From positions 62,001 through 126,000 of IMG/VR virus record IMGVR_UViG_3300019458_000020: DNA of 64,000 nt; one strand, 5' to 3'. The notes beneath the pieces are model-generated. The model did not search any database. It had not been told where the DNA came from and was given only the letters and a program-made list of their open reading frames with translations. This document shows positions 3,907 to 50,160 of this stretch, one piece after another. The position numbers and the translations under genes are program-made. Positions within the stretch are counted from its first letter, which is position 1; each line of letters begins with the position of its first letter.

Positions 3907-4263
3907 TTAAACCTCTTCGCCACGTTCAATTGGAATTCCACCAAAATGATGAACCAATTCATCATACAACATTTCGGCCAATCCACCTTCACCCTCTACA
4001 CTATTACGCATTGGACCGGGACTATAAGGAGACGTGCTTAAAACAGAATAAAGATTAGATGCTTGGCCGGCATGATGATCGTGAGCATACCAATACATAG
4101 CAACTTCAACGTCATCCTTAAATCCATCTTCGTGAGCATGAGGAAGAGAAGATAAATAACCAATCATCTCTTCTCTATCAGGGTCTTGACTTTTACTTTC
4201 GGCCAATACTTCCTTAATACATTCTTTTATTATCTTCTTAAATTCAACTTTACTTATTTTCAT
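3907..4263 (-). CDS. hypothetical protein with IKECIKEVLAE leader (putative internal head protein)
   Basis: N-terminus MKISKVEFKKIIKECIKEVLAE, similar to the N-termini of the ORFs starting at 4567 and 43473. Confidence 0.6.
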   Translation of the reverse strand: MKISKVEFKKIIKECIKEVLAESKSQDPDREEMIGYLSSLPHAHEDGFKDDVEVAMYWYAHDHHAGQASNLYSVLSTSPYSPGPMRNSVEGEGGLAEMLYDELVHHFGGIPIERGEEV

Positions 4264-4264
4264 A

Positions 4265-4567
4265 TTATGCTGTTTCCTTTACCCTATCAAACGATTTAAT
4301 AGCCGATTCTAAATTCTTTTTTATCTCTCCATATCTATGAGTGGCACACCAATACCATATTTTACCATTTATTACTGCTTTTTGAACTGCGGGAGATGGT
4401 TCTCCCTTCGGCCCGTGATGCCAAACAGCTCCAGCGTTCATTACCTGTTTTCTTTCTTCGTCGGTTAATGGAACTTTATTCTTTTTTAATGTTTTAAAAG
4501 TAGGAGACTCAATCAATACTTCCCTTATACATTCTTTAATCAAGAGTTGTAATTCTACACCATTCAT
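4265..4567 (-). CDS. hypothetical protein with LIKECIREVLIE leader (putative internal head protein)
   Basis: Likely start ATG 4567 (MNGVELQLLIKECIREVLIE), overlapping the upstream stop codon. Confidence 0.6.
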   Translation of the reverse strand: MNGVELQLLIKECIREVLIESPTFKTLKKNKVPLTDEERKQVMNAGAVWHHGPKGEPSPAVQKAVINGKIWYWCATHRYGEIKKNLESAIKSFDRVKETA

Positions 4568-5298
4568 ATTATTTTTCCTAAACATTTCCATCCCATATAT
4601 GATTTCCTTACACCATTACATATAAGTGGTATTTTACTTTGTTTTAATCCATACTTTCTTATAAGTTCACACTGGCCTAATATTTCTTCCCCATATTCAT
4701 CATGAAAAAACCTATATCTTCCAGAAAACATTTTGTTTTTTTCTCCTCGATTTAAACCAATATGAGAAATTGATAAATTTTTTCGATGTTCTTCGGTTCT
4801 TACAGGTTTTGGTATTCCCTTTTTGGATTCACTTAATTTTCTTTTTGTTTCATTTGTATGTTTTTTTCCATACATAGGATTTCCGGAACCACATCTTAAT
4901 TTACTTAAATACGGACCAAACCAATCCGGCATTTTAGTGTTTTTGTGTGACTCTTTCATCCGTTTTTTGGTTTCTTCTGTATGTTTTCTACCAACGTTTA
5001 TTATACCCAACGGTCTATCTATCGGTGCAATATTATATTCAGCACCCAATTTATTTTTATAAAAAATTTCTCGTTCAATTAAAATGACTCTTGTAGGAAT
5101 TTGAATGTCCTCTACAATCTCAAAAATAAAATTAGATTCTCCATATTTATTCCACGCACGTTGTAAATATTTATTTTTATGAATATTTCTTCTTAACGTA
5201 CTTTTGTGACAATTCCATCTTCTATTAAATTTTGACACGGTAGAACCCACATATATCTTATTATTTATAATATTTGTGATTTTATATATGCCACCCAT
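4564..5298 (-). mobile_element. GIY-YIG homing endonuclease with NUMOD3 repeats
   Basis: GIYKITNIINNKIYVGS; HKNKYLQRAWNKYG; GNPMYGKKHTNETK. Confidence 0.9.
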
Positions 5299-5299
5299 A

Positions 5300-5803: not shown

Positions 5804-6283
5804 TTAACGCAATACCTTAGATTTTATAAGCACCGTCAAAGCTTCTTTACAAGCTTTATCAAACATTTCCCTACTTGGAGCCTCTGCTCTAAAATTTGTT
5901 TTCAACAAATCGTATGCCCTACCAATGTCTCCACCCACAAAATCATATTCTTCTTCTACATTTTGAACCATACTGTTTACCCAAAGTTTCCAATTTTCAT
6001 CCGATTCCTTTATGTGAGAAGGTTTCAACCAATCAGCTACCTTACTCCAGTCTGGTTCAGGATATTTAATAGCTCCACCACAATCAGAATGATGGGTGGT
6101 ATGTTCTCCTAAAAAATCGCCTTCTATATATGTATGTTTTTCATATATTTCTTTATTACAATGTGGGCATTCATGATATTTAATTTTTCTTTCACGAACA
6201 ATCACATCCTTCAGTTCCATATATGAAGGATTCATTTCACTTACCGATTCGACAATCAAATCTTTTAATTTGTAAATCTTCAT
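5804..6283 (-). CDS. hypothetical Zn-ribbon protein with KLKDLIVE leader
   Basis: MKIYKLKDLIVE; CPHC...HSDC. Confidence 0.55.
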   Translation of the reverse strand: MKIYKLKDLIVESVSEMNPSYMELKDVIVRERKIKYHECPHCNKEIYEKHTYIEGDFLGEHTTHHSDCGGAIKYPEPDWSKVADWLKPSHIKESDENWKLWVNSMVQNVEEEYDFVGGDIGRAYDLLKTNFRAEAPSREMFDKACKEALTVLIKSKVLR

Positions 6284-7456: not shown

Positions 7457-8412
7457 GTAACCTCCTTATTATTAGATATATACATAAATTTTTTAATAGG
7501 GAAAGTTTTTAATTTTTTCTTATTCCAGTCTTCCCAATCACGTTCCCACATATAATAAATATGATATCCTAACTGATTAAGTTTATTAAACTTTTCGATT
7601 GTTTTGTTATATAATTCACCAAAAGTCTTTTTACATTTTTTATTAAAATCTTTTGGGTGGTATATTTTGGGATTGCCGTGATAGTAATCACCTAAAAATT
7701 CAAAAATCTTACCCCTCTTTATACCATCAACCTTAAATTTTAGTATTATTTTTTGTCTATTACATGAAGAATCGGGTATTCCTAAAATATCTAAAAATTT
7801 CATTTCTGGTTTGGATATTTGATGACAACAGATTGGACATCCTTTTCCTGATAAATGACCATATACTCTTTGTTTAAAACTACCGTGTAACGGACAAACA
7901 ATTTCTATTTTACTTCTATTATTGATATACATCGACTTAGAATAGTTATATTTTTCTCCATGAACAGACTTGGCAGAAATAATAAACTTATTCAAATTTT
8001 GTTTTAATGTTCCCCCACATTCTGGACACCCACATCCGTTTAAATGGTCGTTTGGAGACTGTAGAAATTCACCGTGTAATTTACAAATAATCGTAACCTT
8101 ATCTCTATTGCGTTTTCCATATTCTACTAAAGAATAATCATATTTGTCTCCATGAAACAATCTAGCCTTTTTTACAAAAGACTCCGTTGTATCACGAAAT
8201 ATTTCCGATAACTTTATATTCCTACAATTGGAACATCCCGACTTTTTAGAACAATGGTTATCCGGAGTCACTAAAAATAAACCATGTTCTTTACATATTA
8301 CTTCAATTTTTGATTTTGCATTTATATAAACCACTTGAGAATAATCATATTTTTCTCTATGAATGTGTTTAGCTCTTTTTATAAAATCGTCTGTAGATAT
8401 CTTCGGTTTCAT
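7450..8412 (-). mobile_element. free-standing homing endonuclease: three Zn-binding repeats plus a C-terminal PD-(D/E)xK/Vsr-like nuclease
   Basis: Three KYDYS...IC..HG.F......H..G.GC..C repeats; FKVDG, FEFLGDYYHG, MWERDW. Confidence 0.8.
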
Positions 8413-8468
8413 CCACAAATAAGTAGTTTATCCCAATCAGTCATAATATTTATTTTTATACTTAAAAT

Positions 8469-10649
8469 ATGCGCTACGAGCTTTCCCAATTAAATGATTT
8501 AGACGACGAGGTAAGAGAAAAGTTGTCGGCTCTTAGTTTAGATACAGGAATGATGAATTCTATAGCGTCGGAACCAACCATTGAACATCGACCAGTTAGT
8601 GTGGCATATACCGAAGCCGGAGAACCTATAGGATGGGCGACGATATTAGAAACTGGACTCAAAACAATTGGTGCAGAAAGAAGAAAATCAGCATATATCG
8701 GAGTTTACGTTCATCAAGATTATCGAAGATTAGGTGTAGGAACAAAATTGGTCAAAGAATTATTTAAATTATTAAAACGAGAATATGAATATATAGTTGT
8801 TTCTCCACATGACGAAAAAAGCCATCACTTCTTTAAAAATCACGACATCGACAGTTGGGAAGACCGCTCAAAATATTTTGATACAGGAAATTACAAACAA
8901 GGATTAATTAAATTAAAAGAAATTATCTATGAATCCAAAGAAAGCTTCTTTGTTTTAGGTAGAGTTTCGGAGGATGGTGAGGTTGACAAATACGAATTTC
9001 GTGACACAATTACAGACGTACACCCGAGTTCTTGGCGTTCCTCTCATTATAAACTGTGGAGATACTGGAATGTCACTAAAATAGTGTATTGGTGGGAATC
9101 TCCAACCGATGTAGAGAAAGAGGGTGTAGAGTATTTCTTGGGTAGAAAAGGGTACGATATTCAAGGAAATAAATACATGATTCACATGACGCCGGATTTT
9201 AACAAATTATCAGGACATAAGGTTATGGAAACTAAATTGAATGAAGGAAAAAAAGAGAAAGCAGCAGAAGATTTCATTAGGAATATTATTAAAGGAACCG
9301 AATGGGAAGGAAAAGTCTTTATTGCTGGTGGATATGTCCGTGATGAATTTATGGGTAAAGATCCAAAGGATTTAGACCTTCTCGTAAATGCACCTAACGG
9401 CGGAATTGAATTTGCAAATTGGATAACCAAGAAAATTGGTGCCCATTCTGACGGCAATCCGGTTACATTCCCCCGATTCGGAACAGCCAAATTCAATCTC
9501 CGTGGAGTAATCCACGATGGTATTGATTTGAGTGGAATGGATATCGAAGCTGTAATGCCAAGAAAAGAACAATATACCGCTGGAAGTAGAAAACCTGATG
9601 TCACCGGTGGAGATTTAAAAGATGATGTTGAAAGACGAGATTTTACTGTTAATTCGCTATTAAAGGATTTAAGTAGTGGAGAAATTTTGGATTTAACTGG
9701 AATGGGTAAAGATGATATTCGTAAGGGAATTGTTAGAACTCCATTAAATCCAGATAAAATTTTTACTGATGATCCTCTTCGAATGTTAAGAGCTGTACGG
9801 TTTGCAATGAAATATAAATGGAAACTTCCGATGTTTATGTTACGTGGATTGAAGAAAAACGCGGAACAACTTAAAAACATTTCTCAAGAAAGAATCAGAG
9901 ATGAATTGGATAAAATGTTAATGACATCGAATCCACATGGAGCCATCAAATTGATGAAAGTAGTAGGATTACTAAAATACGTTATTCCAGAACTACAAGC
10001 TGCAATCAAAATGACTCAGAACGTTCATCATAAAGATGACGTATTCGACCATATTCTTGATGTTCTATCGAAATCGAATCCCGTATTGGTTCAACGATTA
10101 ATGGCCTTATTTCACGATATTGGAAAGACGGTTACAAAGAGTGTAACACCAACAGGTGTTCATTTTTATGGTCATGAGATGGCCGGTGCAGATATGGTTG
10201 AAACCATCATGACACGATTAAAATATCCTAGAGAATTAATTGATGCAGTAAAACTTGGTGTAAGAAACCACATGAGATTAAAATCAGCTGGTGATACAGG
10301 TGTTAATATTTCCGACAAAGCACTTAGAAAGTTTAAGACAGAAATCGGTGACGAACTTGAAAACGTATTAAGTGTTATTCATGCAGATAATATTGCACAC
10401 GCCGATGCATCATCAATGCCTAATCAGATTAATAATCTAAAAAAGAGATTAGATAATCTAAACATGAATGTTTCTGCTCAAGGAAAACCAAAACTTCCTA
10501 TTAGTGGAAAAGACTTACAAGATATAGGTCTAAAACCAGGACCAATATATAGTGAAATTATGAAGGCAGTCACGGAATCTTGGTTCGAAAATCCAAATAT
10601 AACTAAAGAACAAGCTATTCAAATTGCTAAGTCGATGGCAGGAATATGA
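8469..10649 (+). CDS. cca: GNAT + unknown domain + CCA-adding tRNA nucleotidyltransferase with HD domain (fusion or polyprotein)
   Basis: GNAT motif A VHQDYRRLGVGTKL; class II NTase motifs IAGGYVRD, KDLD, ERRDFTVN, DDPLRMLRAVRF, SQERIRDEL; HD domain DVFDH...LFHDIGK. Confidence 0.85.
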   Translation: MRYELSQLNDLDDEVREKLSALSLDTGMMNSIASEPTIEHRPVSVAYTEAGEPIGWATILETGLKTIGAERRKSAYIGVYVHQDYRRLGVGTKLVKELFKLLKREYEYIVVSPHDEKSHHFFKNHDIDSWEDRSKYFDTGNYKQGLIKLKEIIYESKESFFVLGRVSEDGEVDKYEFRDTITDVHPSSWRSSHYKLWRYWNVTKIVYWWESPTDVEKEGVEYFLGRKGYDIQGNKYMIHMTPDFNKLSGHKVMETKLNEGKKEKAAEDFIRNIIKGTEWEGKVFIAGGYVRDEFMGKDPKDLDLLVNAPNGGIEFANWITKKIGAHSDGNPVTFPRFGTAKFNLRGVIHDGIDLSGMDIEAVMPRKEQYTAGSRKPDVTGGDLKDDVERRDFTVNSLLKDLSSGEILDLTGMGKDDIRKGIVRTPLNPDKIFTDDPLRMLRAVRFAMKYKWKLPMFMLRGLKKNAEQLKNISQERIRDELDKMLMTSNPHGAIKLMKVVGLLKYVIPELQAAIKMTQNVHHKDDVFDHILDVLSKSNPVLVQRLMALFHDIGKTVTKSVTPTGVHFYGHEMAGADMVETIMTRLKYPRELIDAVKLGVRNHMRLKSAGDTGVNISDKALRKFKTEIGDELENVLSVIHADNIAHADASSMPNQINNLKKRLDNLNMNVSAQGKPKLPISGKDLQDIGLKPGPIYSEIMKAVTESWFENPNITKEQAIQIAKSMAGI

Positions 10650-11359
10650 TAAAATTAAAATCTCTCATAAAAGAAGACACAGCATCATGGAAAGATATAA
10701 CCATAGATGATGTCGAAAGTTTATTGTCTTCAAGATGGGTAGATAGAGATTATTCATCTACGTTACGAACCATACAGGATTTTTATTACGATGATGATAA
10801 AAGTAAACAACAACTCATTGTGGAATACTTTGAGTTATTAAATTCGGTGGCTAAATTAGTAATTTCATTGACAAGAAATATTCCACATGTAGATGATAAA
10901 TATATAAAAAGATATCTCTTATCTCAGAATGAATTTCATACATCTCCAGAAGAATTTTTTCCTTTTCCTGTATATGTTTCGGCAACTCCTGGTGACGAAG
11001 ATACTATAGGTATAATGATTGATAAGAATGGAAAAGTATTAGAAATACATGAGGGCAACGATGAATCTTCCTCGGAAACAATCAATATGGTAAATAGAAT
11101 GGTCAATCCTTCCGGAAAAAAAGTAAGGATATATGGGTCACACGATACCAGACTTATTCACGATATTGATGAAAAGGGATACCTACCAAAAAATTTGTAT
11201 GTTTCTCCGGATAAAAATCATGCATCAGGGCATTTGGATTTAAAAGGAGAACGGTCGATGTTTTCGGGAATAATAGATATTAACGGAGTGAGTCAAGAAA
11301 GTGATTTGGATTGGAGAACAATGGATAAAATTAAAATTGAAAAGTTTAGATGGATATGA
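10646..11359 (+). CDS. MIKLK-leader protein; C-terminus possibly a degenerate ADP-ribosyltransferase fold
   Basis: MIKLKSLIKE; RIYGSHD...IDEKGYLP..LYVSPD resembles the ART H/G-G-Y/S strand pattern. Confidence 0.5.
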   Translation: MIKLKSLIKEDTASWKDITIDDVESLLSSRWVDRDYSSTLRTIQDFYYDDDKSKQQLIVEYFELLNSVAKLVISLTRNIPHVDDKYIKRYLLSQNEFHTSPEEFFPFPVYVSATPGDEDTIGIMIDKNGKVLEIHEGNDESSSETINMVNRMVNPSGKKVRIYGSHDTRLIHDIDEKGYLPKNLYVSPDKNHASGHLDLKGERSMFSGIIDINGVSQESDLDWRTMDKIKIEKFRWI

Positions 11360-12558
11360 TTAAGTTAAAAAACATTATACAAGAGGTTCACGAATATCAA
11401 CTCGGAGATGTAATAGTCGGATATATTGATGAAGATGGACACATTATTGCATCAGACAAAGTGAAGGGTCATTCGGTATTATTAGATAAACATCCTTCTT
11501 GGGGGTCGAGAAGAACATATCCTTGGAGATTTAATAAAATCATAAATACTTTGTTCTTTTGGTTTGATAACACACCTGAAAGTATAAAAGAAATGGTTGT
11601 AGATTACTTAAATACAAAAAAATTCAAAGTTAAATCTATTACAACAATTGATGATTTTTGGAGCGATGATCCAAGAAGAAAAAGGTCACTATATCATTCT
11701 CATGGTGGGTCCGGAACATTTGACATTTATAAAGATTTTGCAGAAGAAAATATAAAAGAGGCACCAATTGATACATTTCAAACGATAGGTGATTTTTCAA
11801 AGGGGTCATCTTTTACAAGTAAAGCAGATAGAGCATTGGTTACACATCCTGTAGCAGTGCAAAAAGTAAAAGATTTCTTTAAAAACACTACGGCTAATTT
11901 TGATTTTTATTTCGTTAATACTAAGGATGCAAGAAAATTTACCGAAGTTGGTGAAGTTAAGGAAGACTTCATTTATAAAGACCTTAAAATTCAACCATCT
12001 CAACTAAAAGATGGTAAGATAAATAAAGACAACATAACTGTATTTTTTACCAATAATAAGGGTGCCGAGCGTGCTCCACTAACGCCTTGGATAATGGGCC
12101 ATAGATTTGGTCATGTTGTAAGAAATCTATATTCGTGGAAAGAAGAACTCTCTCCTTGGGTAGAAAGACTATCAGAATATATTCTTGAAGATTATGGAAT
12201 CAAAAAAACTCACAAATGGCATAGCCGGGGGTCTTCAGTAAATAGAGAATATCAAATAGCCATGAGACATCTTTATGAAACCATAGGAACATTCAAAAGT
12301 GCCAGAGATAAAAATCTAAGAGATTATTTTGAATTTCATTATGAATTATTTACGCAGTATTTGAAAGATGGTTCGATAAAATTTAATTCTCTTCCTGATG
12401 TATTGATTGTGGGTCACGGATCATACGGTTCTAAAAAACAAAGACGGCTTTTGAATAGAGAATCAGCCGAAGAAAACTTAGATGAATTGTCTCGTGATTA
12501 TCATTATTATGCCGAAAATGTTTTAAGTGATTGTGTCGGGAAAATTTTTGTCATGTAA
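11356..12558 (+). CDS. MIKLK-leader two-domain hypothetical protein
   Basis: MIKLKNIIQE (ATGA overlap with upstream stop); N-terminal domain paralogous to the middle domain of the CCA ORF; internal IKE/APID junction; HRFGH motif. Confidence 0.6.
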   Translation: MIKLKNIIQEVHEYQLGDVIVGYIDEDGHIIASDKVKGHSVLLDKHPSWGSRRTYPWRFNKIINTLFFWFDNTPESIKEMVVDYLNTKKFKVKSITTIDDFWSDDPRRKRSLYHSHGGSGTFDIYKDFAEENIKEAPIDTFQTIGDFSKGSSFTSKADRALVTHPVAVQKVKDFFKNTTANFDFYFVNTKDARKFTEVGEVKEDFIYKDLKIQPSQLKDGKINKDNITVFFTNNKGAERAPLTPWIMGHRFGHVVRNLYSWKEELSPWVERLSEYILEDYGIKKTHKWHSRGSSVNREYQIAMRHLYETIGTFKSARDKNLRDYFEFHYELFTQYLKDGSIKFNSLPDVLIVGHGSYGSKKQRRLLNRESAEENLDELSRDYHYYAENVLSDCVGKIFVM

Positions 12559-12898
12559 TGAAACCAAAGTATGCAAAAACTAAGTGGGGAAGAATACAAT
12601 TTGGATACCACGAAGACACTGAAACCAGTAATTCGGTAAATGAAGGATGGGTTGTTGATAAAGTTACTGCACACTTAGAATGTTGAACCACCTTTTAGGA
12701 GTGGTGGAGTAGGTTTTGGTTTATATATTGCCGGAGCAAAGTGGAGGGCCGAACGGGGATGGTGTTACACGCATCGTCTCTTCAAAGCACTGAAGCAAAA
12801 AATCTTGGGATAGAATGAAAAGGTTGGGATTGCCGGTAAAAGAATATACGCCAAAATTGGATGTAAAAAAAATATGTCCGGATTATAGAGGAAAATAA
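12558..12898 (+). pseudogene. frameshifted GNAT acetyltransferase remnant
   Basis: Segments in successive frames join into a GNAT: MKPKYAKT...VTAHL / NVEPPFRSGGVGFGLY / GMVLHASSLQSTEAKNL / WDRMKRLGLPV...RGK*. Confidence 0.6.
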
Positions 12899-12900
12899 GT

Positions 12901-13305
12901 ATGATTAAACTTAAAACATTAATAACCAAAGACATCAAAAAGAGATATTCTGGAATTGAATTGGACAGTGAATCTCACGATCGATTGAAAGAGAAATTTG
13001 CGAAATACATTCCCGAAGGGTGGAAGGTTATTGCCCATCACATGACCATAGACCCGTCCAAAACTTTACCTGAAGAAGAGATTGGAAAAGAAGCAAAATT
13101 AAAGGTGACTCATATAGGAAAGAATGATAAAGCCATGGCCGTAAAAGTTTCAGGTTATGAAGGTAAAACCAATAACAAGTTTCCTCATGTTACATTGGCT
13201 GTTAATGATAAGGCCGGCGGAAAACCAAAAGATTCCAACGAAATAACGGAGTGGGATGATGTAAAAGAAGATATTTATCTTACGGGTATTATAAATAATC
13301 TATGA
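12901..13305 (+). CDS. 2H phosphoesterase (RNA-repair / cyclic phosphodiesterase type) with MIKLK leader
   Basis: Two HxT motifs: AHHMTID and FPHVTLAVN. Confidence 0.75.
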   Translation: MIKLKTLITKDIKKRYSGIELDSESHDRLKEKFAKYIPEGWKVIAHHMTIDPSKTLPEEEIGKEAKLKVTHIGKNDKAMAVKVSGYEGKTNNKFPHVTLAVNDKAGGKPKDSNEITEWDDVKEDIYLTGIINNL

Positions 13306-13595
13306 TTAAACTAAATCATATAATAAATGAGGATAAACGACTATATCGTGGAGATTGTCGAACGATATTAGGTCAAGATGACTTATTTAATGATGCTACT
13401 CAAATGTCTGGTGCTATAGAAAATAGTGATAAAATAGACTATCATACTTTTGGGAATGAAGCCAATTTAACAGGTGCCCCAAGAATGTTTAAATTGAGAC
13501 TCCGAAGAAATACCGATAAATTTGATTTTGGAAAATATAAAGATTTGGTTTGGGCATACGATACAGAAACAGATATTCATTATTTCTTTTTATGA
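13302..13595 (+). CDS. MIKL-leader hypothetical protein
   Basis: MIKLNHIINE; ATGA overlaps on both sides. Confidence 0.6.
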   Translation: MIKLNHIINEDKRLYRGDCRTILGQDDLFNDATQMSGAIENSDKIDYHTFGNEANLTGAPRMFKLRLRRNTDKFDFGKYKDLVWAYDTETDIHYFFL

Positions 13596-18148: not shown

Positions 18149-18156
18149 AAAATAGA

Positions 18157-18186: not shown

Positions 18187-18190
18187 AAAT

Positions 18191-18823: not shown

Positions 18824-18830
18824 AATAATT

Positions 18831-41380: not shown

Positions 41381-41990
41381 GAATGTCTCGAATGATGGTT
41401 TCGGTCTTTTCCCATTTTCCGGTTATAGGATTCTTAACTTGACTGACTCCTTCATTCAGACTTCCTTCTGGATACAGAAATGCACCACGAGTAGATGGAT
41501 TAGAAACGAAATCAAAAGCAATAAGTTCAAAATCAGGTTGAACTACATCCACATCTTCAGACATGTTTTTCTTAACCGTTCCAAGTCCACGACTGGAAAT
41601 ACCTAATCTAATATTTGAACGGAAGAGTTCTTTTAAGATGTTTCCATTGGGTGTAGGTAATACTTCTACAGTTCCAACCAAATCATCATTTTCCCAATGC
41701 ATTTCAACAATGTTATGAGAAACGTTTTGAAGATTGACAACGGAAGATTCTGGATGGTCTAATTCTCCTAATGCTCTACGTTCTTTAATAAAATTCTCTT
41801 CATATTTTCCTGCTTCACGAAGAAGAATTTCACGAGTATAAACACGACCGTTTTGATTTTTCTTTCCGGCACGTTGTAGAACACCTTTGACGATCAATCT
41901 TCGGTTCATGTCGCCTGCGGCTTGTTCAAAGAGGGTATCTCTTACGAAATCGAATGGGATACAATCTACTAATAGTCTCTTATCATTCAT
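41364..41990 (-). CDS. gp21: prohead protease (T4 gp21 family)
   Basis: KGVLQRA..KNQNGRVY, ALGELDHP, NVSH, TPNGNIL, GISSRGLG, FDFVSNPSTRGA. Confidence 0.95.
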   Translation of the reverse strand: MNDKRLLVDCIPFDFVRDTLFEQAAGDMNRRLIVKGVLQRAGKKNQNGRVYTREILLREAGKYEENFIKERRALGELDHPESSVVNLQNVSHNIVEMHWENDDLVGTVEVLPTPNGNILKELFRSNIRLGISSRGLGTVKKNMSEDVDVVQPDFELIAFDFVSNPSTRGAFLYPEGSLNEGVSQVKNPITGKWEKTETIIRDILGNME

Positions 41991-42997
41991 ACAAGTTCCT
42001 TTGTAATAGTAAAGAGATAATTTCTACCAATAGATTCTATTTCTACAATATTTTTAGATGGTTGATTGTGATTTCTTAATCCATTGACTAGATTCAACTT
42101 CATCTCTTTTAAATCGACATTGTTTTTGAATTCTTTCTTTGGTATTTCCATGATGAATTCCAATACTCTATTTTTTGATTCGTTGACGGATGTTTTTGGT
42201 CCCTTTATAAAAGGAGATAAATTTAATGATTCATTTACTAAGAATTCTTCCAAAGCCAATTTCAATTCTTTTATAGTTTTGGTTTTTTTTGATTCTCCGA
42301 GTTTTTTATTCTCTTCATCATCCGGATTTTCTTGACCAGGCAATTCAGCAGGCTTCTTTACAGCAACTGCTGCAGTTGATGGTTCTGGTTCTGGTTCCGG
42401 TGCCGGCGAGGGTGGTGTCGGTTCGTCAGGAGATTGTGTTTGTGCCGGAGCCGGTGCTGGTGATGGTTCAGGACCTTCTGGCTTCGATGGTGCAGCTGAA
42501 GGAACAGGAGATTCTGGTTTATCAGGTTGTTCGGGAGCACCAGCAGCCTCTATTTTAATATTTACACCCGGTGTTAGAAAGTATTCTTTTCCATTTGCGT
42601 CGCTTAGTACCACAACATTTTTGTTGTAATACCAATCAACACTGGCTTTGGATACATTATCAATAGTATAATCTTTTTGTGGTTGTCCATATCCACGAGA
42701 AGCATTGACGGTTACTTTTTTACCTACAACTGATGCATTCATTTTATCTAAGAATTTTTTCTTGGCATCAGCTTTTGCTTTATTTACACTATCTTCAAAT
42801 TCTTTAAAATCCTTTGTGAAATCATAATCACCAGTACCAGCCGCAGCTGGTTCTGGAGCGGCAGAAGTTGGGTCAGGAGTTGGTGTAGTCTTTGCTGCAA
42901 CTACAGCCGTATCTTGTGCAGGTGGAACCGTTTCTCCTTCAGGAGAAGGGGTCGGTGATGCTTCTTGAATCTTGATTAAGTTTTTTAATCTTATCAT
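41987..42997 (-). CDS. MIRLK-leader Pro/Ala-rich head-associated protein
   Basis: Likely start 42997 (MIRLKNLIKIQE); ASRGYGQPQKDY core; P/A/E-rich linkers. Confidence 0.6.
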   Translation of the reverse strand: MIRLKNLIKIQEASPTPSPEGETVPPAQDTAVVAAKTTPTPDPTSAAPEPAAAGTGDYDFTKDFKEFEDSVNKAKADAKKKFLDKMNASVVGKKVTVNASRGYGQPQKDYTIDNVSKASVDWYYNKNVVVLSDANGKEYFLTPGVNIKIEAAGAPEQPDKPESPVPSAAPSKPEGPEPSPAPAPAQTQSPDEPTPPSPAPEPEPEPSTAAVAVKKPAELPGQENPDDEENKKLGESKKTKTIKELKLALEEFLVNESLNLSPFIKGPKTSVNESKNRVLEFIMEIPKKEFKNNVDLKEMKLNLVNGLRNHNQPSKNIVEIESIGRNYLFTITKELV

Positions 42998-42999: not shown

Positions 43000-43473
43000 T
43001 TATTCCCAATCTTTTTTGACCGGAGTATATCCGATACTTTTACTTCCTTCGATACCTTTTTTACTTCCTTTTTTATTCTTACTGAAAGCAAAAGGGGTAT
43101 TATATCCCGCAACTCCGCCGGTGGTTGACATCTCACTCAAATATTCATCAGCAGGAACGAATTTTGAATCCGCCCCGCTTCCCTTACCATAAAACCATTT
43201 TCCGTGTTCATCTTTATACATCCAATGTCTGTCACCCGAAGCCGAATGCAGTAATACTTCAAAAAATTTCGTTTTACCATCTAAGCTAGTAGAATGAAAT
43301 CTGGTAAGATGCACCGGCTGCCAAATTTTACTAGCAACGGTTTTTGCTTCTTCCATTTCTTCATCACTTATCTTAGCATCATGTTTTGGAAGTTTTTTAC
43401 CATTAAATTCGTTTTCTTTCAACACTTCCTCTACACACTCTTTGATAAGAGCATATAATTTTACTTTATCCAT
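43000..43473 (-). CDS. LIKECVEEVLKE-leader head-associated protein
   Basis: MDKVKLYALIKECVEEVLKE; C-terminal LSE/MSTTGGVAGYNTPFAF. Confidence 0.6.
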   Translation of the reverse strand: MDKVKLYALIKECVEEVLKENEFNGKKLPKHDAKISDEEMEEAKTVASKIWQPVHLTRFHSTSLDGKTKFFEVLLHSASGDRHWMYKDEHGKWFYGKGSGADSKFVPADEYLSEMSTTGGVAGYNTPFAFSKNKKGSKKGIEGSKSIGYTPVKKDWE

Positions 43474-43474: not shown

Positions 43475-44353
43475 TTACTTTTTATTTACACATTGATTCT
43501 TTACTTCTTTTAATAATTCATAAGAAAGAAGAACCACCATAACATGATTATCTTTTATTTTCCTTTCAGGACTTACTCTATCGAGTTGTTTTACAACTTC
43601 AGTAATTTTTATTTTAACTACCTCGGAATCAATGGATTCACTTAATGTTGATAATTCCGATTTAATAGAGTGTATTTGTTTTGCCAAATAACTTCCTAAA
43701 GAATTTGTATTCGAAACGTTATTGATATATTCTCTCAATACTGCCTTTTGATTATCATCCATCGAAGAATATTTTTTATTCATTTTTTCGACCAACATTT
43801 TATATGTCAAAAGTCTAATATCTTCACTTTGAGACTCATAAAACGAAAGTAATTCTTGACTTTCAGTAGTCTTCTTTGGCTTACCGGCAATATGTTCAAC
43901 AATACATGAACGTGCTTGAAAAACTTCTTCTACATCAAACTTAGAATCACAGCTAGTAACATCTTCGAAGAGTTTGAAAATAGATGCCAATGCTCTGTAG
44001 TTTTTAATGTTTGATTTTAGAAATTCCTCAATCGGATACAAATTCTTTATTTCTTTAATTAAGCTATATTTTTCCTTTAATAACCTGTTGTTATTCAGTT
44101 TCTTCCTTTGTTCCAGAATAACGGATAAAAATCTTTCGGCGTGGTGTAAATCTTTTACTTTTTCTTGTAGAAGGAGTCCGTATAATCTCCATTCATGACC
44201 TATCTCGGTGGTTTCTTTGAAGTATTTGAAGAGCAATTTTTTTGCCTCCGATTCTTCCGTGCCAGTAATAATATCTGCAGTGATTTGACGTGTCAAAAGC
44301 TCAAACAGAATACCTGTATTTCTAAACTTAGAATGACGCATTTTCTTAGGCAT
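43475..44353 (-). CDS. head-module protein between portal and protease (putative prohead core protein)
   Basis: HSKFRNTGILFELLTRQIT, EKYSLIKEIK, QKAVLREYIN; position in the head module. Confidence 0.6.
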   Translation of the reverse strand: MPKKMRHSKFRNTGILFELLTRQITADIITGTEESEAKKLLFKYFKETTEIGHEWRLYGLLLQEKVKDLHHAERFLSVILEQRKKLNNNRLLKEKYSLIKEIKNLYPIEEFLKSNIKNYRALASIFKLFEDVTSCDSKFDVEEVFQARSCIVEHIAGKPKKTTESQELLSFYESQSEDIRLLTYKMLVEKMNKKYSSMDDNQKAVLREYINNVSNTNSLGSYLAKQIHSIKSELSTLSESIDSEVVKIKITEVVKQLDRVSPERKIKDNHVMVVLLSYELLKEVKNQCVNKK

Positions 44354-44419: not shown

Positions 44420-47400
44420 TTACTCGTCAATTATATTACTTTCATCCATTAATGATGGTGTATTTTCGGTTTCTTTAATTAACTCCTTCTTTTCCTTGAC
44501 TGCTCTTTTTCCAGAAAGATGTGTATCCAAAGATTTTATAATTTGTTGATTCATTACGAATTTTGCGGATTTCGGAAGGACATTTTCTAAATTTAATGGA
44601 GAAGTCTTGTTCCGAAGAGATTTCAACTTCTTTTGTTTTTCTATTTCTAATTTTAATGCAGAATTCATTTCCAAGGTGCCTCTTGGGTCTTCGCCGAATC
44701 TAAAATCTCGTCTGGCATTTTTTACTCCCTTTTGGGATGGTCGTTCATAATCCTCTGCGTGTTCTCCATGACCCTCCTTTACATCTTCCGATTCTGTTAG
44801 ACCGGTATCCTTTCCAGCCGGTTCACCCAGAGCCGCTGCTAAATCAGCTTCATCTCCTTCACCACCCGGACCTCCCTCGTCGCCCATATCTGGCCCTCCA
44901 CCTAAATCCGGTCCTCCGCCGGGCCCGCCTTCATCACCACCTGGCTCTCCGCCAGGTCCACCCTCTGGATTAATTTTATTAAATGGTTTTGCTGGGTCAT
45001 TACCATCTTCTTCTATTTGCTTTATTCTCCAAGCTTGGATAGCGTCTTCTATAACCGCCTTCGCAATTTCATCGGTATCATCATCCGAAAGATTGAAAAT
45101 ATTTTTATAAATCCAAGATTTAGAAAATAATTTAGCTTCCATCATGTTCGATGCAACATCAACCTTATTACCCCACAATTCGATTTTCTCCTTTTCAAAG
45201 ATTGTGGATGGGTTGGTTAGTTCTAATCTAAAGTTAACTAATTTTTCATCTCTATATCCCTGTGAATAAAGATGAAGAATAGAAATTTTTTCCAATTCTG
45301 ATACGATAATTCCTTGAATTCTTTGAATTGTCTTTGCGAAACGAATATCTTCGGAAGCCAAGGTGGCTTTTCCGGATAATTCGTCTTCATAACCCAAAAA
45401 TGCTTTAGGAATTTTTAAAGCAGCCATCATCTTATTTCTAAGATATTCAATATCTTCAATTCCTGTGAATTCCATTCCACCCAACGTATCAATAGAGGAT
45501 CCACTATCACTTCCACGAACAGGTAGATAAAAATCTTCTACCATGTTTTGAAGATTGAATCGAAGGTTATAATCTCCGGTTTGTGGGTCTAAATAAGGGA
45601 CTTTCTTCATTTTGGAGATTACTTTTTCCATGTATGCATCTACTTCTCCGGGTGGAATATTTCCTACATCCATCTTAAAAATACGTTTTTCAGGAGCACG
45701 CATGATTCTGTGAATCAACATAGCGTCTTCCATCAAACTTAATTGTTTCCAAATACGTCGAGCACTTTCTATCATAGATTTTCCATAAGGAAGAAAATTA
45801 GAATCAGAAATTAATCGAAAGTGTGCCAATTCAAAAGACTCCAAAGTTTCTACAGCAGAAGTATCGGTAGGACGAATTTGAAACTTTACGTAGTTTTTAT
45901 TCATCGGGTCGGAATTTTCAATTCGTTCTACATTATATGCAGAAACAGGCTCGATTTGATAAACACCGTATTCTGGAGAGATATAAGTTCTAAGATAGAA
46001 ATCTCCGTATTTACATAAATTTCTTGTCCAAGACCAAAGATTAAATTCAATATTAAGAATATCATAATGAAGATTATGAAGCACTTCTTTTATATTATCA
46101 TCTTCAGTATGAACGGTAAGAATTTTACCCATTTCATTTTTTGTAACACATTCATCAGCGTAAATATCTAAAGCAGAGGCTAATATGGGGTCCATATCCA
46201 TTGTATTTGAAACAAAACAACTATCTGTAGAAAAGTTTTTATACTTCTCTACAGTTACATCATAAACATCAACTTCACCAATACTTTCAATGGATACTAT
46301 TTTATGGTTTAAAGTTGATTCTACTTCTTGCTTAAAAGATTTCCAGTCATGACCTTCTTTTTTCAGACGGTTTTGAAGAGTAGAATGATCACATCGAATA
46401 TGTTTAATAAAATCCCATAGATTTATCTTGGAGTTTTCTTTGTAGAATTCCAACGCTTTTTCTTTTACATTAGAAAAGGTTATATCTCCACGATATTTTG
46501 GATTACGTTCTTCCGTTTGATTTCTATCCTTGAACACTTCTTTAAGAGTTTCAGAACGAGTTTTATTTGATTTTTCAGAATGGGTTTTTCCAAAAAAAGG
46601 ATTATTTTCACCAACTCGTTCTCCATCCCAATGATGAAATTTACGGTTAATATAGTTTGGGTGCGATTTTAATTTATTGAGTTGATTTTCATAATTTTCA
46701 TCCCCCCACAATATATTTTTACTATAATTAGAATGAAATTGTATATGTTCATCCTTCGTCATTATTTGTAAATTGTCGGGGGAATTATCATAACCGTTGA
46801 AGTTTTTATGATGAACCACTTCGTTGTCATTCAATGATCGGTCAAATTGTTCCGCAACTACAACGTGTTCAGATTGCCAACCTTTAGAAAAGTTATACAG
46901 TTTTTTATATTTATTATATTTACAGTTATAATCCTTTTGATAGAAAGGCATCACAGAATCGCCTACACGAAGTTCATATATCATTTTATACGAACCATCT
47001 CGCATCATAAACGGATGTTTCAAACTTCCAACGACATACTGTCCGTTATCAAATATTACCTTGTAACCAATGCGTTTACCTTTTTTCTTTCTAGGATGAT
47101 ACGCTTTACCTAATTTAATAGAATCTGTTTCGTGGTCATAGGAAAATACATAAAACCGTTCTTGTGGTTTATCTTTATATTTTTCAGCAAGTTCTGATAT
47201 TGTTGGTCGAGAACCATCTGGCAACGGAATGATGGTATCTGGACCGACACAATCGTAATCCCTGAACAAATCGATGCGAGCAGCTTGATAAGATAAAGCA
47301 AAATCTCTTGTATATGCATTATACGCAGTAGAACGGACACGATTGAATCTATCTCGAAGGCTGTTTCTATCTGTTGCGTATCCTAACTGACTGGTATCCT

Positions 47401-47539
47401 TTACTTTTAATTTTTTTCCACCTACGTTACGAACTACCGCACCAGAGGATAAAAGTCTTTTTAATCTAGCATACAGCGACTTTTGCTTTACATCTATTTC
47501 GTCTTCGTTTCCGAATGGTTTTAAGTTATTTACCGGCAT
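44420..47539 (-). CDS. gp20: portal vertex protein (T4 gp20 family), intein-containing
   Basis: DPILASALDIYADE, RNLCKYGDFY, LPYGKSMIESARRIWKQL.LMEDAMLIHRIMRAPEKRIF, EDFYLPVRG, ALKIPKAFLG. Confidence 0.93.
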   Translation of the reverse strand: MPVNNLKPFGNEDEIDVKQKSLYARLKRLLSSGAVVRNVGGKKLKVKDTSQLGYATDRNSLRDRFNRVRSTAYNAYTRDFALSYQAARIDLFRDYDCVGPDTIIPLPDGSRPTISELAEKYKDKPQERFYVFSYDHETDSIKLGKAYHPRKKKGKRIGYKVIFDNGQYVVGSLKHPFMMRDGSYKMIYELRVGDSVMPFYQKDYNCKYNKYKKLYNFSKGWQSEHVVVAEQFDRSLNDNEVVHHKNFNGYDNSPDNLQIMTKDEHIQFHSNYSKNILWGDENYENQLNKLKSHPNYINRKFHHWDGERVGENNPFFGKTHSEKSNKTRSETLKEVFKDRNQTEERNPKYRGDITFSNVKEKALEFYKENSKINLWDFIKHIRCDHSTLQNRLKKEGHDWKSFKQEVESTLNHKIVSIESIGEVDVYDVTVEKYKNFSTDSCFVSNTMDMDPILASALDIYADECVTKNEMGKILTVHTEDDNIKEVLHNLHYDILNIEFNLWSWTRNLCKYGDFYLRTYISPEYGVYQIEPVSAYNVERIENSDPMNKNYVKFQIRPTDTSAVETLESFELAHFRLISDSNFLPYGKSMIESARRIWKQLSLMEDAMLIHRIMRAPEKRIFKMDVGNIPPGEVDAYMEKVISKMKKVPYLDPQTGDYNLRFNLQNMVEDFYLPVRGSDSGSSIDTLGGMEFTGIEDIEYLRNKMMAALKIPKAFLGYEDELSGKATLASEDIRFAKTIQRIQGIIVSELEKISILHLYSQGYRDEKLVNFRLELTNPSTIFEKEKIELWGNKVDVASNMMEAKLFSKSWIYKNIFNLSDDDTDEIAKAVIEDAIQAWRIKQIEEDGNDPAKPFNKINPEGGPGGEPGGDEGGPGGGPDLGGGPDMGDEGGPGGEGDEADLAAALGEPAGKDTGLTESEDVKEGHGEHAEDYERPSQKGVKNARRDFRFGEDPRGTLEMNSALKLEIEKQKKLKSLRNKTSPLNLENVLPKSAKFVMNQQIIKSLDTHLSGKRAVKEKKELIKETENTPSLMDESNIIDE
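46205..47251 (-). mobile_element. intein (349 aa) with HNH endonuclease in the portal protein
   Basis: N-junction RDYD/CVGPDTII.L.DG; block B SLKHPFM; HNH VVHHKNFNGYDNSPDNL; block F VYDVTV; C-junction FVSN/T; exteins rejoin as RDYD-TMDMDPIL. Confidence 0.9.
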
Positions 47540-47590
47540 AAAAATCTATAAATACGTATGTAAGTTTCAGTATAATACATATAATTATAT

Positions 47591-49198
47591 TTACAACAAC
47601 CAGTCTAATTTTTCTATTTCATCCGGCCCTTTTCCTATTTTCATCTGCCAATATTTTTGGGCCGCACCAGTAGAGTTAGAAGTATAAATAGGGGAAGAAT
47701 TATCAGGTTTCTGTGGTACACCTATGGTATCTAACATTTTTTTAGTTAAATAGATACCTTCCTGTCTTAATTTTAAAGCCGTATCTCTTACCCAAAGACC
47801 TAACCCCAAAGACAGAACTAAATCGTCGTTATAATTGTCCGCTGCTTGAGCTTTACCGTTCTTCCAAATAAACGTCTTTAATTCGTTTATCGTTCTTATA
47901 GAGTGAATTTTTATCGCCTTTTCTCTAAAGTATGCTTCCAATTTAGAAATAACCAACGGTCGTGTCGATATTGTCGTCGAAAAACCAGGCAACAACTTTT
48001 TATCCTCACTGTAATATTTGGTCTTCAACTGACGTTCTACTTCGATGTATTTTAAGTCTGCTGAACAATAAAAGGTATTTTGATATTTTCTATCAACAAT
48101 TTGTTGTAATACCGCCCATCCTATATTTTCTCTTTCAACAATAAGCAACGCATCGTTATACTCTGTAGCCAAATTTACCAAAGAATTACCATAATCTTTT
48201 GTTCCTGGCTGGTCAACGTATTCAGCTACTTGTTCCAATGATTCCAAATCTAATACATGAAATGCACTATAATCTAATCCGTCACCACGAGCAACGTCAG
48301 CACACACGATATAATCTTTGGAATAATCAGGAGGAGCAAATACCCACAATCCGCCGCCCAAGCGAATCTCCAATGGGTCACGAACTAAATTCTCTTCATA
48401 CCATTTTAGAATATTCAAATCAACCACGTTTGTACCAGATGTCAAAAAGTCGCAATCACATTCTTGGTTTGCATCTTTTTCTCCGAGATTTTTAGTTTGT
48501 AAATCTCTCCAAGCCTGATCTCGTTCAGGATGTAAATGCCAAGGAAGGGTTATAGTTTTAAAATCATTCTTTTTCTTCTCGGCTTCTATCCACATTTTAT
48601 GAAACCAATTACCAACACCATTTGGTGTAGATAATACGATTGCATTTCCACCGGTAGATAGGGTTGATTGTGCAGAAGTCCAAATATCATCAGCACAATC
48701 TATGAATGCGGCTTCGTCCAAAACTAGAAGACTCAGTGCCATAGAACGTCCCGCATCACTAGAAGATGATGTAGCTTTGATTGCTGACCCATTCTTTAAT
48801 CGTAATGAAAGTCTATTATCTTCAGTAGCCACTACTTTTAACCAAGAAGGAAGATGGTCATTAGCAAATCTAACCTTGGTTACTATTTCTTTGGAAACTT
48901 CTTGTTTAATGGAAATAATCAAGACGTTTTTATCTTGATGAAATATCATTAACCAAAGAGAATATGCAGCGACCAAAGTCGTTATACCCATTTGACGAGA
49001 TTTCAATACGAGATTGAATCGATTATCACAAAAGGTTTGTAGTGTGTCTTCTTGGAATGGGTATAGTTCAAATGGAATGGTTCCCCTATGTGGATGTTGA
49101 ATCTTAACATACTTCTTCATGAAGTAAATTGGGTCTAACAGACATTTCTTGTATTCTTCCTTAATTATGTCTCTAAGATTTGGTTGACCATTAGCCAT
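47591..49198 (-). CDS. gp17: terminase large subunit (T4 gp17 family)
   Basis: DPIYF, FELYPFQ, LKSRQMGITT, LVLDEAAF, LSTPNG, QECDCDF, ADVARGDGLDYS, NDDLV; likely start 49198. Confidence 0.95.
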   Translation of the reverse strand: MANGQPNLRDIIKEEYKKCLLDPIYFMKKYVKIQHPHRGTIPFELYPFQEDTLQTFCDNRFNLVLKSRQMGITTLVAAYSLWLMIFHQDKNVLIISIKQEVSKEIVTKVRFANDHLPSWLKVVATEDNRLSLRLKNGSAIKATSSSSDAGRSMALSLLVLDEAAFIDCADDIWTSAQSTLSTGGNAIVLSTPNGVGNWFHKMWIEAEKKKNDFKTITLPWHLHPERDQAWRDLQTKNLGEKDANQECDCDFLTSGTNVVDLNILKWYEENLVRDPLEIRLGGGLWVFAPPDYSKDYIVCADVARGDGLDYSAFHVLDLESLEQVAEYVDQPGTKDYGNSLVNLATEYNDALLIVERENIGWAVLQQIVDRKYQNTFYCSADLKYIEVERQLKTKYYSEDKKLLPGFSTTISTRPLVISKLEAYFREKAIKIHSIRTINELKTFIWKNGKAQAADNYNDDLVLSLGLGLWVRDTALKLRQEGIYLTKKMLDTIGVPQKPDNSSPIYTSNSTGAAQKYWQMKIGKGPDEIEKLDWLL

Positions 49199-49203
49199 AA
49201 GTT

Positions 49204-50160
49204 TTAATATTCTATTGCACCAATCATCATATACCACTCGTCGCCATATTTATCTAAATTTTTACGAACCGTGGATGGTCTATATTTCACCCACTTTTCA
49301 TTCATTTGTTGATAAATATAAACCCATTGTATGTGATTTGGTAATATAGTTCCGCTATATCCGAACTTACCCAGTTCTTTAGACAATGACAGTGGTTTCA
49401 TTTCGGATGTATCGTCTTCTGACCTATCAGATGGGTGGTCATAATATTTTTGATGTTTAGATGTTATTTCTGCATCATAATCAGGAGCAATCAAACTTTT
49501 ATCTGGTATAGAAATTTGGAGGATTACTTGTCCTCCGCCGTGGTTATGGACTGCTTGAGACGAATAAAATTTTGATTGGTCAAATCTAGCGGCAAAGAAA
49601 ATTTCGTTATAGTGTTCAACTCCCCTGTCACCAAAATTTCCTCCTGTCTGTGCAGGCCTCAATCCCTTTTTCAAAATTCCATCAAGAAATTCTGTACTAG
49701 TTCCATGAAACCCAATAGACGGAACTTCTCCTGTTATCTTTTTCTTGGCCAAATTAATTGTTTCGGAATCCTCATCATCACTTTTACTAACTTGTTTTAT
49801 TCCCAAATCTTTTACAATTTTCCTGATGATAATAGACGTAGATGGATTTGATTTATCAATACCATGAACGAATAATCTTTTATTTTTTTTGTCTAAATCG
49901 CCGGTTACTACATCCGGAGGAAGTTCTCCGGAAAGACTTACAATATCATAAACACTTTCAGCAGACTCTAGTGATTCTTTGGAATATTTACTCTTTTGAA
50001 TATATGGATGTTGACGTAGGTGGGCCTTCAACTCCGATATATCACTGTCAGTATCCAAGATAAACAATTTGTCTTTCCAAACGACAACAACGGAGTGTTC
50101 TTTTCCGGTCGTCAAGTCTTTGACAATGTATTCTTGTAATAATGACTTCAAACGTATCAT
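49204..50160 (-). CDS. MIRLK-leader protein with ADP-ribosyltransferase-like domain
   Basis: Likely start 50160 (MIRLKSLLQE); GFHGTS...ILKKGLRP...IFFAA...YSGTILP. Confidence 0.65.
   Translation of the reverse strand: MIRLKSLLQEYIVKDLTTGKEHSVVVVWKDKLFILDTDSDISELKAHLRQHPYIQKSKYSKESLESAESVYDIVSLSGELPPDVVTGDLDKKNKRLFVHGIDKSNPSTSIIIRKIVKDLGIKQVSKSDDEDSETINLAKKKITGEVPSIGFHGTSTEFLDGILKKGLRPAQTGGNFGDRGVEHYNEIFFAARFDQSKFYSSQAVHNHGGGQVILQISIPDKSLIAPDYDAEITSKHQKYYDHPSDRSEDDTSEMKPLSLSKELGKFGYSGTILPNHIQWVYIYQQMNEKWVKYRPSTVRKNLDKYGDEWYMMIGAIEY

Follow-up and report, generated by a model that had tools for sequence, protein, structure and literature searches.

Why should a phage begin so many of its otherwise different genes with the same ten residues? 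The question is raised by a 64-kb stretch of DNA, positions ~62,001-126,000 of the 250,813-bp IMG/VR contig IMGVR_UViG_3300019458_000020 (hereafter the window), in which 14 open reading frames (ORFs) start with variants of the peptide MIKLKxLIxE and one further copy lies inside an ORF. The source of the window is a distant T4-like jumbo phage. The best explanation is probably that the peptide is the leader of a T4-type system in which cargo proteins are targeted to the capsid and the leader is cleaved off by the prohead protease, the system being greatly expanded and having a leader sequence of its own. For the source phage, leader counts refer to these 64 kb of the contig.

The class-1 leader has the consensus M-I-K-L-K-x-L-[IL]-x-E, is ~10 residues long and is N-terminal, and a longer class-2 leader is found on three small ORFs. 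A preliminary description, made from the letters of the window, had listed 18 leaders, all of which are present at the coordinates given there (14 class-1, one internal and three class-2); ~18% of window genes carry a leader. Both classes were recovered without prior knowledge by an unsupervised all-against-all comparison of N-termini. The strict pattern I[KR]L[KNSM]x[LI][ILVY]x(1-4)E matches ten times in the ~128,000 six-frame codons of the window, nine times directly after the initiator Met of a long ORF and once at the internal copy, LIKLKEIIYE. A position weight matrix of the leader, a check suggested in that description, gives 15 matches in the window against a shuffle mean of 1.6, and a strict regular expression finds six ORFs in the window and none among 1,668 ORFs from 1.04 Mb of unrelated IMG/VR loci. 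The 30-nt leader segments of the window differ from each other at synonymous sites and leader codon usage (172 leaders) is near that of gene bodies, which argues that the constraint acts on the peptide. No conservation was seen in the DNA upstream of the window leaders. A DNA-level repeat or promoter was considered and rejected, since neither this upstream DNA nor the synonymous sites of the leaders are conserved.

Leader genes are embedded in the head, neck and packaging modules of the window. As first described, replication genes carry no leader, nor do metabolic genes or the tail-fibre paralogues: it is absent in the window from the SbcCD-like nuclease, primase, methyltransferase, GMP reductase, NADAR, RlaP and homing endonucleases, and from the tail-fibre paralogues, major capsid protein (MCP), portal and terminase. 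The ORFs that carry class-1 leaders, including that with the internal copy, are listed below (relatives are given by locus numbers such as L082; ART, ADP-ribosyltransferase).

5804-6283, minus strand: 159 aa, leader MKIYKLKDLIVE (nt 6283-6248), its core preceded by two further residues; cargo Cys/His-rich, no Pfam or PHROG match.
8469-10649, plus strand: 726-aa fusion of GNAT (aa 40-125), the internal LIKLKEIIYE (nt 8904-8933) and a CCA-adding enzyme with PolyA_pol, RNA-binding and HD domains (Pfam).
10646-11359, plus strand: 237 aa, MIKLKSLIKE; the L082 orthologue keeps the leader.
11356-12558, plus strand: 400 aa, MIKLKNIIQE; the first ~80 aa resemble the stretch behind the internal leader of the CCA ORF.
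12901-13305, plus strand: 134 aa, MIKLKTLITKD; 2H phosphoesterase, tRNA-ligase CPD-like (PF08302, 1.9e-5; PHROG 36523).
13302-13595, plus strand: 97 aa, MIKLNHIINE.
13592-14512, plus strand: 306 aa, MIKLSTLLEE; GNAT acetyltransferase plus phage lysozyme (Pfam, PHROG).
14509-15045, plus strand: 178 aa, MIHIAKLVTE; 2H phosphoesterase, LigT / Acb1-like (PF13563, 1.5e-10; PF23474, 5.4e-7).
15042-15452, plus strand: 136 aa, nine-residue variant MILLKNIVE; ART fold like the NAD lobe of Tpt1/KptA, a Tpt1 match that was weak by PDB sequence search and then confirmed by fold search (Foldseek, 8tg4, E 1.6e-5).
21933-22595, minus strand: 220 aa, MKLKTLILLNE; the L143 orthologue starts MMIKLKPLLNE.
22617-23006, minus strand: 129 aa, MIKLKNIVVE.
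23006-25108, minus strand: 700 aa, MIKLSSILNE; N-terminal ART-like region, as in 15042 and 49204.
30647-30946, plus strand: 99 aa, class-1-like leader MIKLMEIYHTVEE.
41987-42997, minus strand: p336, 336 aa, MIRLKNLIKIQE followed by a Pro/Ala-rich region.
49204-50160, minus strand: 318 aa, MIRLKSLLQE; PARP-type ADP-ribosyltransferase (PF00644, 1.2e-6); the orthologues in L020 and L123, 40% identical, begin MIHLKPLLKE and MIKLKPLIQE.

Pfam and PHROG leave ten of the 18 leader proteins without a match, as they do p292, p345 and p471, and sequence searches of the PDB with 11356, 23006 and 49204 returned nothing useful. The domains behind the leaders had been described as unrelated to each other, and mostly this is so; leader-stripped comparison nevertheless reveals an ART-type NAD-binding region common to 15042, the N-terminus of 23006 and 49204, and a segment common to 11356 and the CCA ORF 8469, while 12901 and 14509 are both 2H phosphoesterases. 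Three window cargo proteins have an ART fold (one Tpt1/KptA-like, one PARP-like and the N-terminus of the 700-aa protein). Most cargo is single-domain, the multi-domain proteins being 8469 (GNAT and CCA), 13592 (GNAT and lysozyme) and 23006, whose C-terminal domain is a separate leader-tagged protein in L027. From these domain matches the cargo is predicted to include an RNA-repair or anti-signalling set, made up of two 2H phosphoesterases (one Acb1-like) and the CCA-adding enzyme. Orthologues of the CCA-adding enzyme in L082, L110, L046 and L273 bear the leader at their true N-terminus, so the internal copy in the window is the trace of a GNAT gene fused before a leader-CCA gene. An alternative start at this internal copy was rejected, as its Leu codon is TTA.

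The protease that would remove the leader is encoded in the same module. The preliminary description had placed a local gp21 at 41364-41990, and the product is an S77 homologue by Pfam, PHROG and comparison with the structure of T4 gp21 (PDB 5JBL), in which the catalytic His (GELDHP) and Ser (SSRGLG) are retained on alignment to 5JBL and the Bragavirus protease. The T4-like head and packaging genes of the window, and two proteins of interest beside them, are as follows.

26680-28395, minus strand: major capsid protein, gp23-like, 571 aa.
28436-29851, minus strand: p471, candidate scaffold, 471 aa, directly upstream of the MCP as in immuto and Mel-JY01 (synteny); no family match.
41364-41990, minus strand: prohead protease, Peptidase S77 of the T4 gp21 family (PF03420, 1.8e-22, 80.2 bits against a curated cutoff of 27; PHROG 207, 4e-49; 5JBL, 3.7e-11).
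43475-44353, minus strand: p292, conserved head-module protein adjoining the portal.
44420-47539, minus strand: portal, gp20-like, interrupted by an intein with an HNH endonuclease (Pfam).
47591-49237: large terminase (TerL).

Genes of the window follow the order portal, p292, p157 (class 2), p336 (class 1) and protease, compared with portal, gp67, gp68 and protease in the Straboviridae reference. The p336 gene at 41987 occupies the gp67/gp68 slot, adjoining the protease on the upstream side, and its leader is kept in 26 related loci; p336 is a candidate prohead-core or major internal protein. The portal-adjacent p292, which all relatives encode, as do immuto and Mel-JY01, and which has no family assignment, holds six [LIM][LIV]xE sites among its 292 aa. 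This density, 2.05 per 100 aa where the window average is 0.33 (~6-fold), would be expected of a degraded core protein. The protein is a candidate for a degradable core component and also a candidate for the docking partner of the leader. In the MCP a conserved L-[ILV]-[DS]-E (LIDE-61) stands where the propeptide would be expected to end, just ahead of the block aligning with mature T4-like gp23. Short propeptides of the same style occur in the Straboviridae reference, ending LLRE in the vertex protein (start MTNKIQKLLRE), LIEE in the scaffold (start MLKEFLIEE) and LLIE at the protease N-terminus (..ILLIE). The portal intein (Intein_splicing) contains HNH_3 and NUMOD3 motifs, and the portals of relatives align only to residues ~1-104 and 446-851. 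The PARP-like ART at 49204 is wedged between TerL, which it overlaps, and a 199-aa ORF at 50162-50761, an arrangement also seen in L020 and L123; the 199-aa ORF is a possible small terminase, with no family match.

Proteases of the gp21 family cleave at a motif of the form (L/I)-x-E. The gp21-type consensus [LI][ILV]xE ends 12 of the 14 window leaders, the exceptions being 12901 and 30647. An unbiased profile was built from 68 ORFs picked by MI[KR]L alone, leaving positions 5-10 free of selection: L or I occupies position 7 in 94%, L/I/V/M position 8 in 90%, and in 71% the first Glu falls at position 9 or 10. Over all leaders, the most conserved non-Met positions are L4, L/I7, I/L/V8 and E10. 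In T4, gp21 cuts C-terminal to Glu (PMC5694885), and the first ten residues of IPIII are enough for encapsidation, with targeting mainly through residues 4 and 7 and processing through residues 8 and 10; Asp at position 10 stops processing and leaves targeting unaffected (PMC9026906). The leader is constrained at these same positions, 4, 7, 8 and 10, as far as conservation, and not function, is compared. Applied to 12901, which had been described as lacking the Glu and in fact has Asp at position 11 instead, the T4 rule suggests a protein that may be targeted but unprocessed. Processing of 30647 is uncertain, since its orthologues (n=12) retain MIKL/MISL..LL and have no fixed Glu. Leader and T-even capsid-targeting sequence (CTS) share length and hydrophobic/acidic pattern, a likeness over ten residues that is too short for a homology statistic. 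AlphaFold2 (AF2) models the leader of 15042 as a detached helix of low confidence at residues 4-10 (residues 1-9 with a predicted local distance difference test score, pLDDT, below 50), and the folded domain begins at residue 19. At 9-13 aa, and with an aliphatic P3, the leader is unlike phiKZ-like propeptides, which are ~100 aa or more and end A/S/G-x-E.

These features are consistent with a pathway whose steps (docking, cleavage, retention in the head and ejection) we infer from sequence. The N-terminal leader, as an amphipathic helix with M1/L4/L7/I8 on its hydrophobic face, would dock the new protein onto the scaffolding core of the assembling prohead. After closure of the shell, the S77 protease (41364-41990) would cut behind the Glu of [L][ILV]-x-E, and the freed mature enzymes would stay beside the DNA in the head and reach the host cell on infection, ahead of phage gene expression. 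Once inside, they would counter host attacks on tRNA, RNA and nucleotide signals, in advance or by repair, would ADP-ribosylate or acetylate host proteins or nucleic acids, and would aid passage through the wall. The proposal of T4-type capsid targeting and gp21-type cleavage in the preliminary description thus appears to hold up, being supported by the protease, the motif, its register, the gp67/gp68 slot, the types of cargo and the leaderless state of replication and metabolic genes. Among the cargo are families that match virion-delivered effectors, namely ARTs (as T4 Alt), lysozyme and, in relatives, ART-PolyVal and MPTase-PolyVal.

The leader is not confined to the window. A scan of IMG/VR with degenerate DNA for M-I-K-[LF]-K-x-[LIFM]-[LIVFM]-x-E returned at least 158 matches in at least 120 stretches; 142 of the 158 listed matches start ORFs of at least 60 aa, no more than 25 codons from an upstream stop, and 27 of the at least 120 listed stretches hold 2-5 leader copies in tandem. 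With a codon-reversed control pattern, gene starts were hit in 11 of 119 listed matches and just one stretch had two matches. Because the totals of both scans are lower bounds, leader and control were compared by N-terminal fraction and by multi-match loci. At least 50 leader loci share head or packaging genes with the window (portal, protease, TerL or MCP, at 50-74% identity). Leader loci and 27 relatives ascertained by their protease together yield at least 173 distinct leader ORFs, which fall into 102 clusters whose leader-stripped bodies are without BLAST similarity to one another. Orthologous cargo (ART, CCA, Tpt1-like) retains the leader though the bodies diverge to 40-60% identity, and the linker from leader to domain varies in length among orthologues, being indel-rich in the Tpt1-like family.

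Annotation of 51 cluster representatives adds Mom, ART-PolyVal, MPTase-PolyVal, ADPrib_exo_Tox and a Zeta_toxin-like kinase to the cargo of the clade, as well as RNase_T, NT5C, a cell-wall hydrolase, HD and others, several of them characteristic of the "polyvalent proteins". An independent assembly, L273 (GCA_040384425.1), has a syntenic cargo island that adjoins a gp13-like neck gene and runs from a NUDIX, hydrolase and ART-PolyVal protein to leader-tagged Tpt1-like, 2H/Acb1-like and CCA genes. The protein that heads this island, a 718-aa fusion of NUDIX, cell-wall hydrolase and ART-PolyVal domains (7848-10004, plus strand, of JAWVGW010000781.1), has no MIKLK leader, terminal or internal, and may have another route into the virion, or none.

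The class-2 leader is ~20 aa long and follows the pattern ..LIKECIxEVLxE, or more broadly ..[LI]IKEC[IV]xEVLxE, within the first 20-28 residues of three small ORFs that are alike in their first ~20 residues only.

3907-4263, minus strand: 118 aa, with an N-terminal helix of ~22 aa ending IIKECIKEVLAE; in relatives the protease is directly followed by homologues.
4265-4591, minus strand: class-2 ORF with its likely start Met at 4567, giving MNGVELQLLIKECIREVLIE.
43000-43473, minus strand: p157, 157 aa, MDKVKLYALIKECVEEVLKE, between p292 and 41987 in the gp67/gp68 position.

The class-2 proteins are probably small prohead-core proteins with a longer propeptide, handled as class 1. A similar start, MKKSxLKxLIKxIVKEA..E, is found on small protease-flanking proteins of relatives and of immuto. 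The latter phage (NC_055915, L001-L003) has shared N-terminal leader families of its own on otherwise different hypothetical proteins: MENFDLKKFLVEN.. on 4-5 ORFs (e.g. L001 1803 and L003 3806, 17631, 18632 and 25241), MKKSQL..IKE.. (e.g. L003 2294, 2880, 13188 and 23355) and MKKQILSEQF..AGIITE on two ORFs (L001 25061 and L003 11675). Each of these families ends aliphatic-aliphatic-x-Glu, and different leaders with the same motif suggest that lineage-specific leaders over a common cleavage motif are general in the wider group; tag and docking partner may co-evolve as lineage-specific address systems. If the tag acts like the T4 CTS, virions should contain the proteins that bear the immuto leaders MENFDLKKFLVE and MKKSQL..IKE, with these leaders cut off.

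Several observations weigh against capsid targeting followed by cleavage. The resemblance of ten residues to the T4 CTS is too short to prove homology, and several L273 orthologues, as well as 12901 and 30647, are without the canonical Glu, a sign either that not all leaders are processed or that these ones are decaying. The class-2 segment is on small head-module proteins, not on enzymes, and is to be taken as a caveat. The T4 late promoter TATAAATA occurs 18 times in the window, which is about chance, and is not placed before leader genes, so it gives no late-promoter marker of their timing. No cultured phage of the clade is present in the collection searched, the MIKLK leader is absent from Flavobacterium phage immuto, and the first 50 kb of Mel-JY01 contains degenerate leader variants only, with no MIKLK. 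Finally, several leader genes adjoin neck and tail-fibre genes, not head genes, and the leader-stripped cargo is not basic (median isoelectric point 6.4), unlike the DNA-associated internal proteins of T4.

The last two points lend some weight to the view that the leader is a docking or latency propeptide for another destination, such as the inner membrane, the baseplate or tail, a phage-built compartment or a chaperone, with or without removal by the head protease. The leader is a short amphipathic helix in the AF2 model, as could serve such docking, and the lysozyme domain (PHROG 13211 match) could fit a tail device. We nevertheless consider another destination unlikely. The Glu at a fixed distance after two aliphatics is the S77 cleavage consensus, the same tag is on the prohead-core-slot gene beside the protease in every relative, and T4 Alt, which is head-packaged, is likewise encoded near baseplate genes (PMC5512222). 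With regard to the membrane, a Sec or lipoprotein signal was sought by its n-region, hydrophobic core of at least 7-15 residues and signal-peptidase site; the leader, at 10 aa and charged every 2-3 residues, has no h-region or hydrophobic core and no signal-peptidase site.

A second alternative accepts targeting and cleavage and holds that the cargo acts in the head, as structural, scaffolding or DNA-organising proteins, with no delivery to the host. The low complexity and head-module position of 41987 and the class-2 proteins, which look like core components, would suit it, as would the ten cargo bodies without a recognisable enzymatic domain. Yet a CCA-adding enzyme, 2H phosphoesterases, ARTs and lysozyme have substrates only in cells, and the same domain types are predicted injected effectors elsewhere, which makes a purely structural role distinctly improbable.

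It is very improbable that translation initiation or coupling, through A/T-rich codons and ATGA overlaps, produced the shared N-terminus as a side effect, with no targeting. Six leader genes of the 10646-15452 array do have ATGA stop-start overlaps and leader codons are slightly more A/T-rich than bodies, but L4, L/I7, I/L/V8 and E10 are conserved through all synonymous codons, only ~18% of genes carry the leader and the most highly expressed structural genes are not among them, the codon-reversed control of equal composition is hardly ever at a gene start, and an internal copy stands where two ORFs fused. The A-rich initiation bias that had been named as a possible refutation is of this kind. 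Hardly tenable at all is a leader that serves as a DNA-level homology cassette for shuffling accessory genes or is the remnant of one diverged family, for although leader genes lie in tandem arrays of variable content, like the T-even Ip hotspots, and the C-terminal domain of 23006 sits behind its own leader in L027, divergence among the 30-nt segments is too great for homologous recombination and the at least 102 clusters have no detectable similarity and different folds.

Capsid targeting by a cleaved leader has well-studied counterparts. It is a known principle that T-even internal proteins, though unrelated, have a packaging leader in common and nothing else (PMC3012670, PMC12373910), and the likeness extends to a ~10-residue N-terminal tag as the sole similarity among unrelated proteins, its length, the register 4/7/8/10, the terminal Glu with aliphatic P3, the S77 protease in the head module and the genes in variable arrays (PMC9026906, PMC3012670, PMC12373910). 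The window system differs in its leader sequence, in being known from genes alone and in the co-existence of a second, longer leader class. It differs also in scale (14 copies and an internal one within 64 kb, and >100 cargo families over the clade, where T4 has three and the T-evens together ~10) and in its cargo, which is largely enzymes and not basic, where the T-even proteins are small basic inhibitors of GmrSD-type nucleases. T4 Alt, a head-packaged, gp21-processed and injected ART with an N-terminal propeptide encoded among late structural genes, is paralleled by the three leader-tagged ART-fold proteins of the window and by ADPrib_exo_Tox (R-S-E type) cargo in relatives; unlike Alt, the window ARTs are PARP-like and Tpt1/KptA-like and lie outside the Alt/VIP2 clade.

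Polyvalent proteins were predicted by Iyer et al. (2017) to be injected with phage DNA (PMC5512222). They have in common with the leader cargo ART-PolyVal, MPTase-PolyVal, peptidoglycan hydrolases and nucleotide/RNA enzymes (PMC5512222), and delivery with the DNA at the earliest stage of infection is predicted for both; polyvalent proteins carry 2-15 domains per polypeptide, whereas the cargo described here is mostly encoded by separate, singly tagged genes. In phiKZ, 201phi2-1 and SPN3US a gp21-related protease cuts many proteins of the head interior on the C-terminal side of Glu, and the N-termini of paralogues are conserved (PMC5694885). Propeptides in these phages are mostly >100 aa, with the motif A/S/G-x-E and no short universal tag, unlike the leader. 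Encapsulin cargo-loading peptides and P22 scaffold fusions are further cases in which a short terminal peptide loads arbitrary cargo into an HK97-fold shell, although the encapsulin peptide, in contrast to the leader system, is C-terminal and uncleaved and its cargo is not delivered anywhere.

The window has a G+C content of ~35%. The nearest isolates, Microcystis phage Mel-JY01 and Flavobacterium phage immuto, and the metagenomic huge phage LR756508 share just 52-55% identity with the window phage in TerL and MCP; Rhodothermus phage RM378 is a more distant relative than these three in TerL/MCP searches. Megablast of the MCP region against GenBank phages gave zero matches, and relatives were found at the protein level.

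Leaderless genes of the window include many selfish endonucleases, several of which adjoin leader or head genes. Free-standing GIY-YIG homing endonucleases are encoded at 4564-5298 (minus), 26059-26634 (plus) and 50766-51416 (minus), two with NUMOD3 and one SegE-like, and a TnsA-like/NUMOD3 endonuclease and another NUMOD3 ORF at 35650-36522 (minus) and 38690-39388 (plus). Accessory enzymes without a leader are a NADAR domain protein (33358-33876, minus), RlaP of the RNA-repair-pathway Pol-beta family (34541-35662, minus) and a GMP-reductase/IMPDH-family enzyme (39348-40295, minus); together with the leader cargo, these leaderless genes suggest a broader ADP-ribose and RNA-repair theme. An SPFH/Band-7 membrane protein (32044-33285, minus) begins MKLKTKLILSILLVAF.., a genuine transmembrane/signal start, in contrast to the leader. 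An R2K-clade ATP-grasp protein (25164-25991, minus) adjoins the leader genes of 21933-25108, and an endonuclease VII homologue (30922-31329, plus) and a DUF5662 protein (37225-37749, minus) lie further along. At 17381-21930 (plus) there are tandem paralogues with repeated N-termini (..EFVAKNGI.. / ..SVKI.GATSN..) and without a Pfam match, which are probably a duplicated tail-fibre or receptor-binding cassette.

The literature search found no earlier description of this leader system, no mention of MIKLK in a phage context in any paper found, no proteomics of the clade and no paper on Mel-JY01. As the principle is known already, the novelty lies in scale, leader sequence and cargo. The clade, which is distant, uncultured and partly jumbo, uses a leader different from the known one, carried by ~18% of window genes and fronting >100 cargo families; the cargo is enzyme-rich and overlaps the polyvalent repertoire, and two leader classes co-exist. 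We are evenly divided on the broader reading, in which the tag is a sequence-readable code for virion cargo in a large, uncultured, partly jumbo T4-like clade, listing >100 families of injected effectors, including a packaged RNA-repair/anti-signalling kit (CCA-adding enzyme, 2H/Acb1-like phosphoesterases and Tpt1/KptA-like and PARP-like ARTs) that acts before phage transcription. If the tag acts like the T4 CTS, it would give a computational handle on the proteins that accompany the DNA and counter host defences in the first seconds of infection. It would also yield >100 candidate effector families, mostly without assigned function, from a clade without a cultured member, and new orthogonal sets of tag, protease and scaffold for protein encapsidation. 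Loading by a CTS would then be no T-even peculiarity, being instead old, scalable and able to handle full-size enzymes (up to 700 aa here), and it would represent a single-gene alternative to polyvalent proteins.

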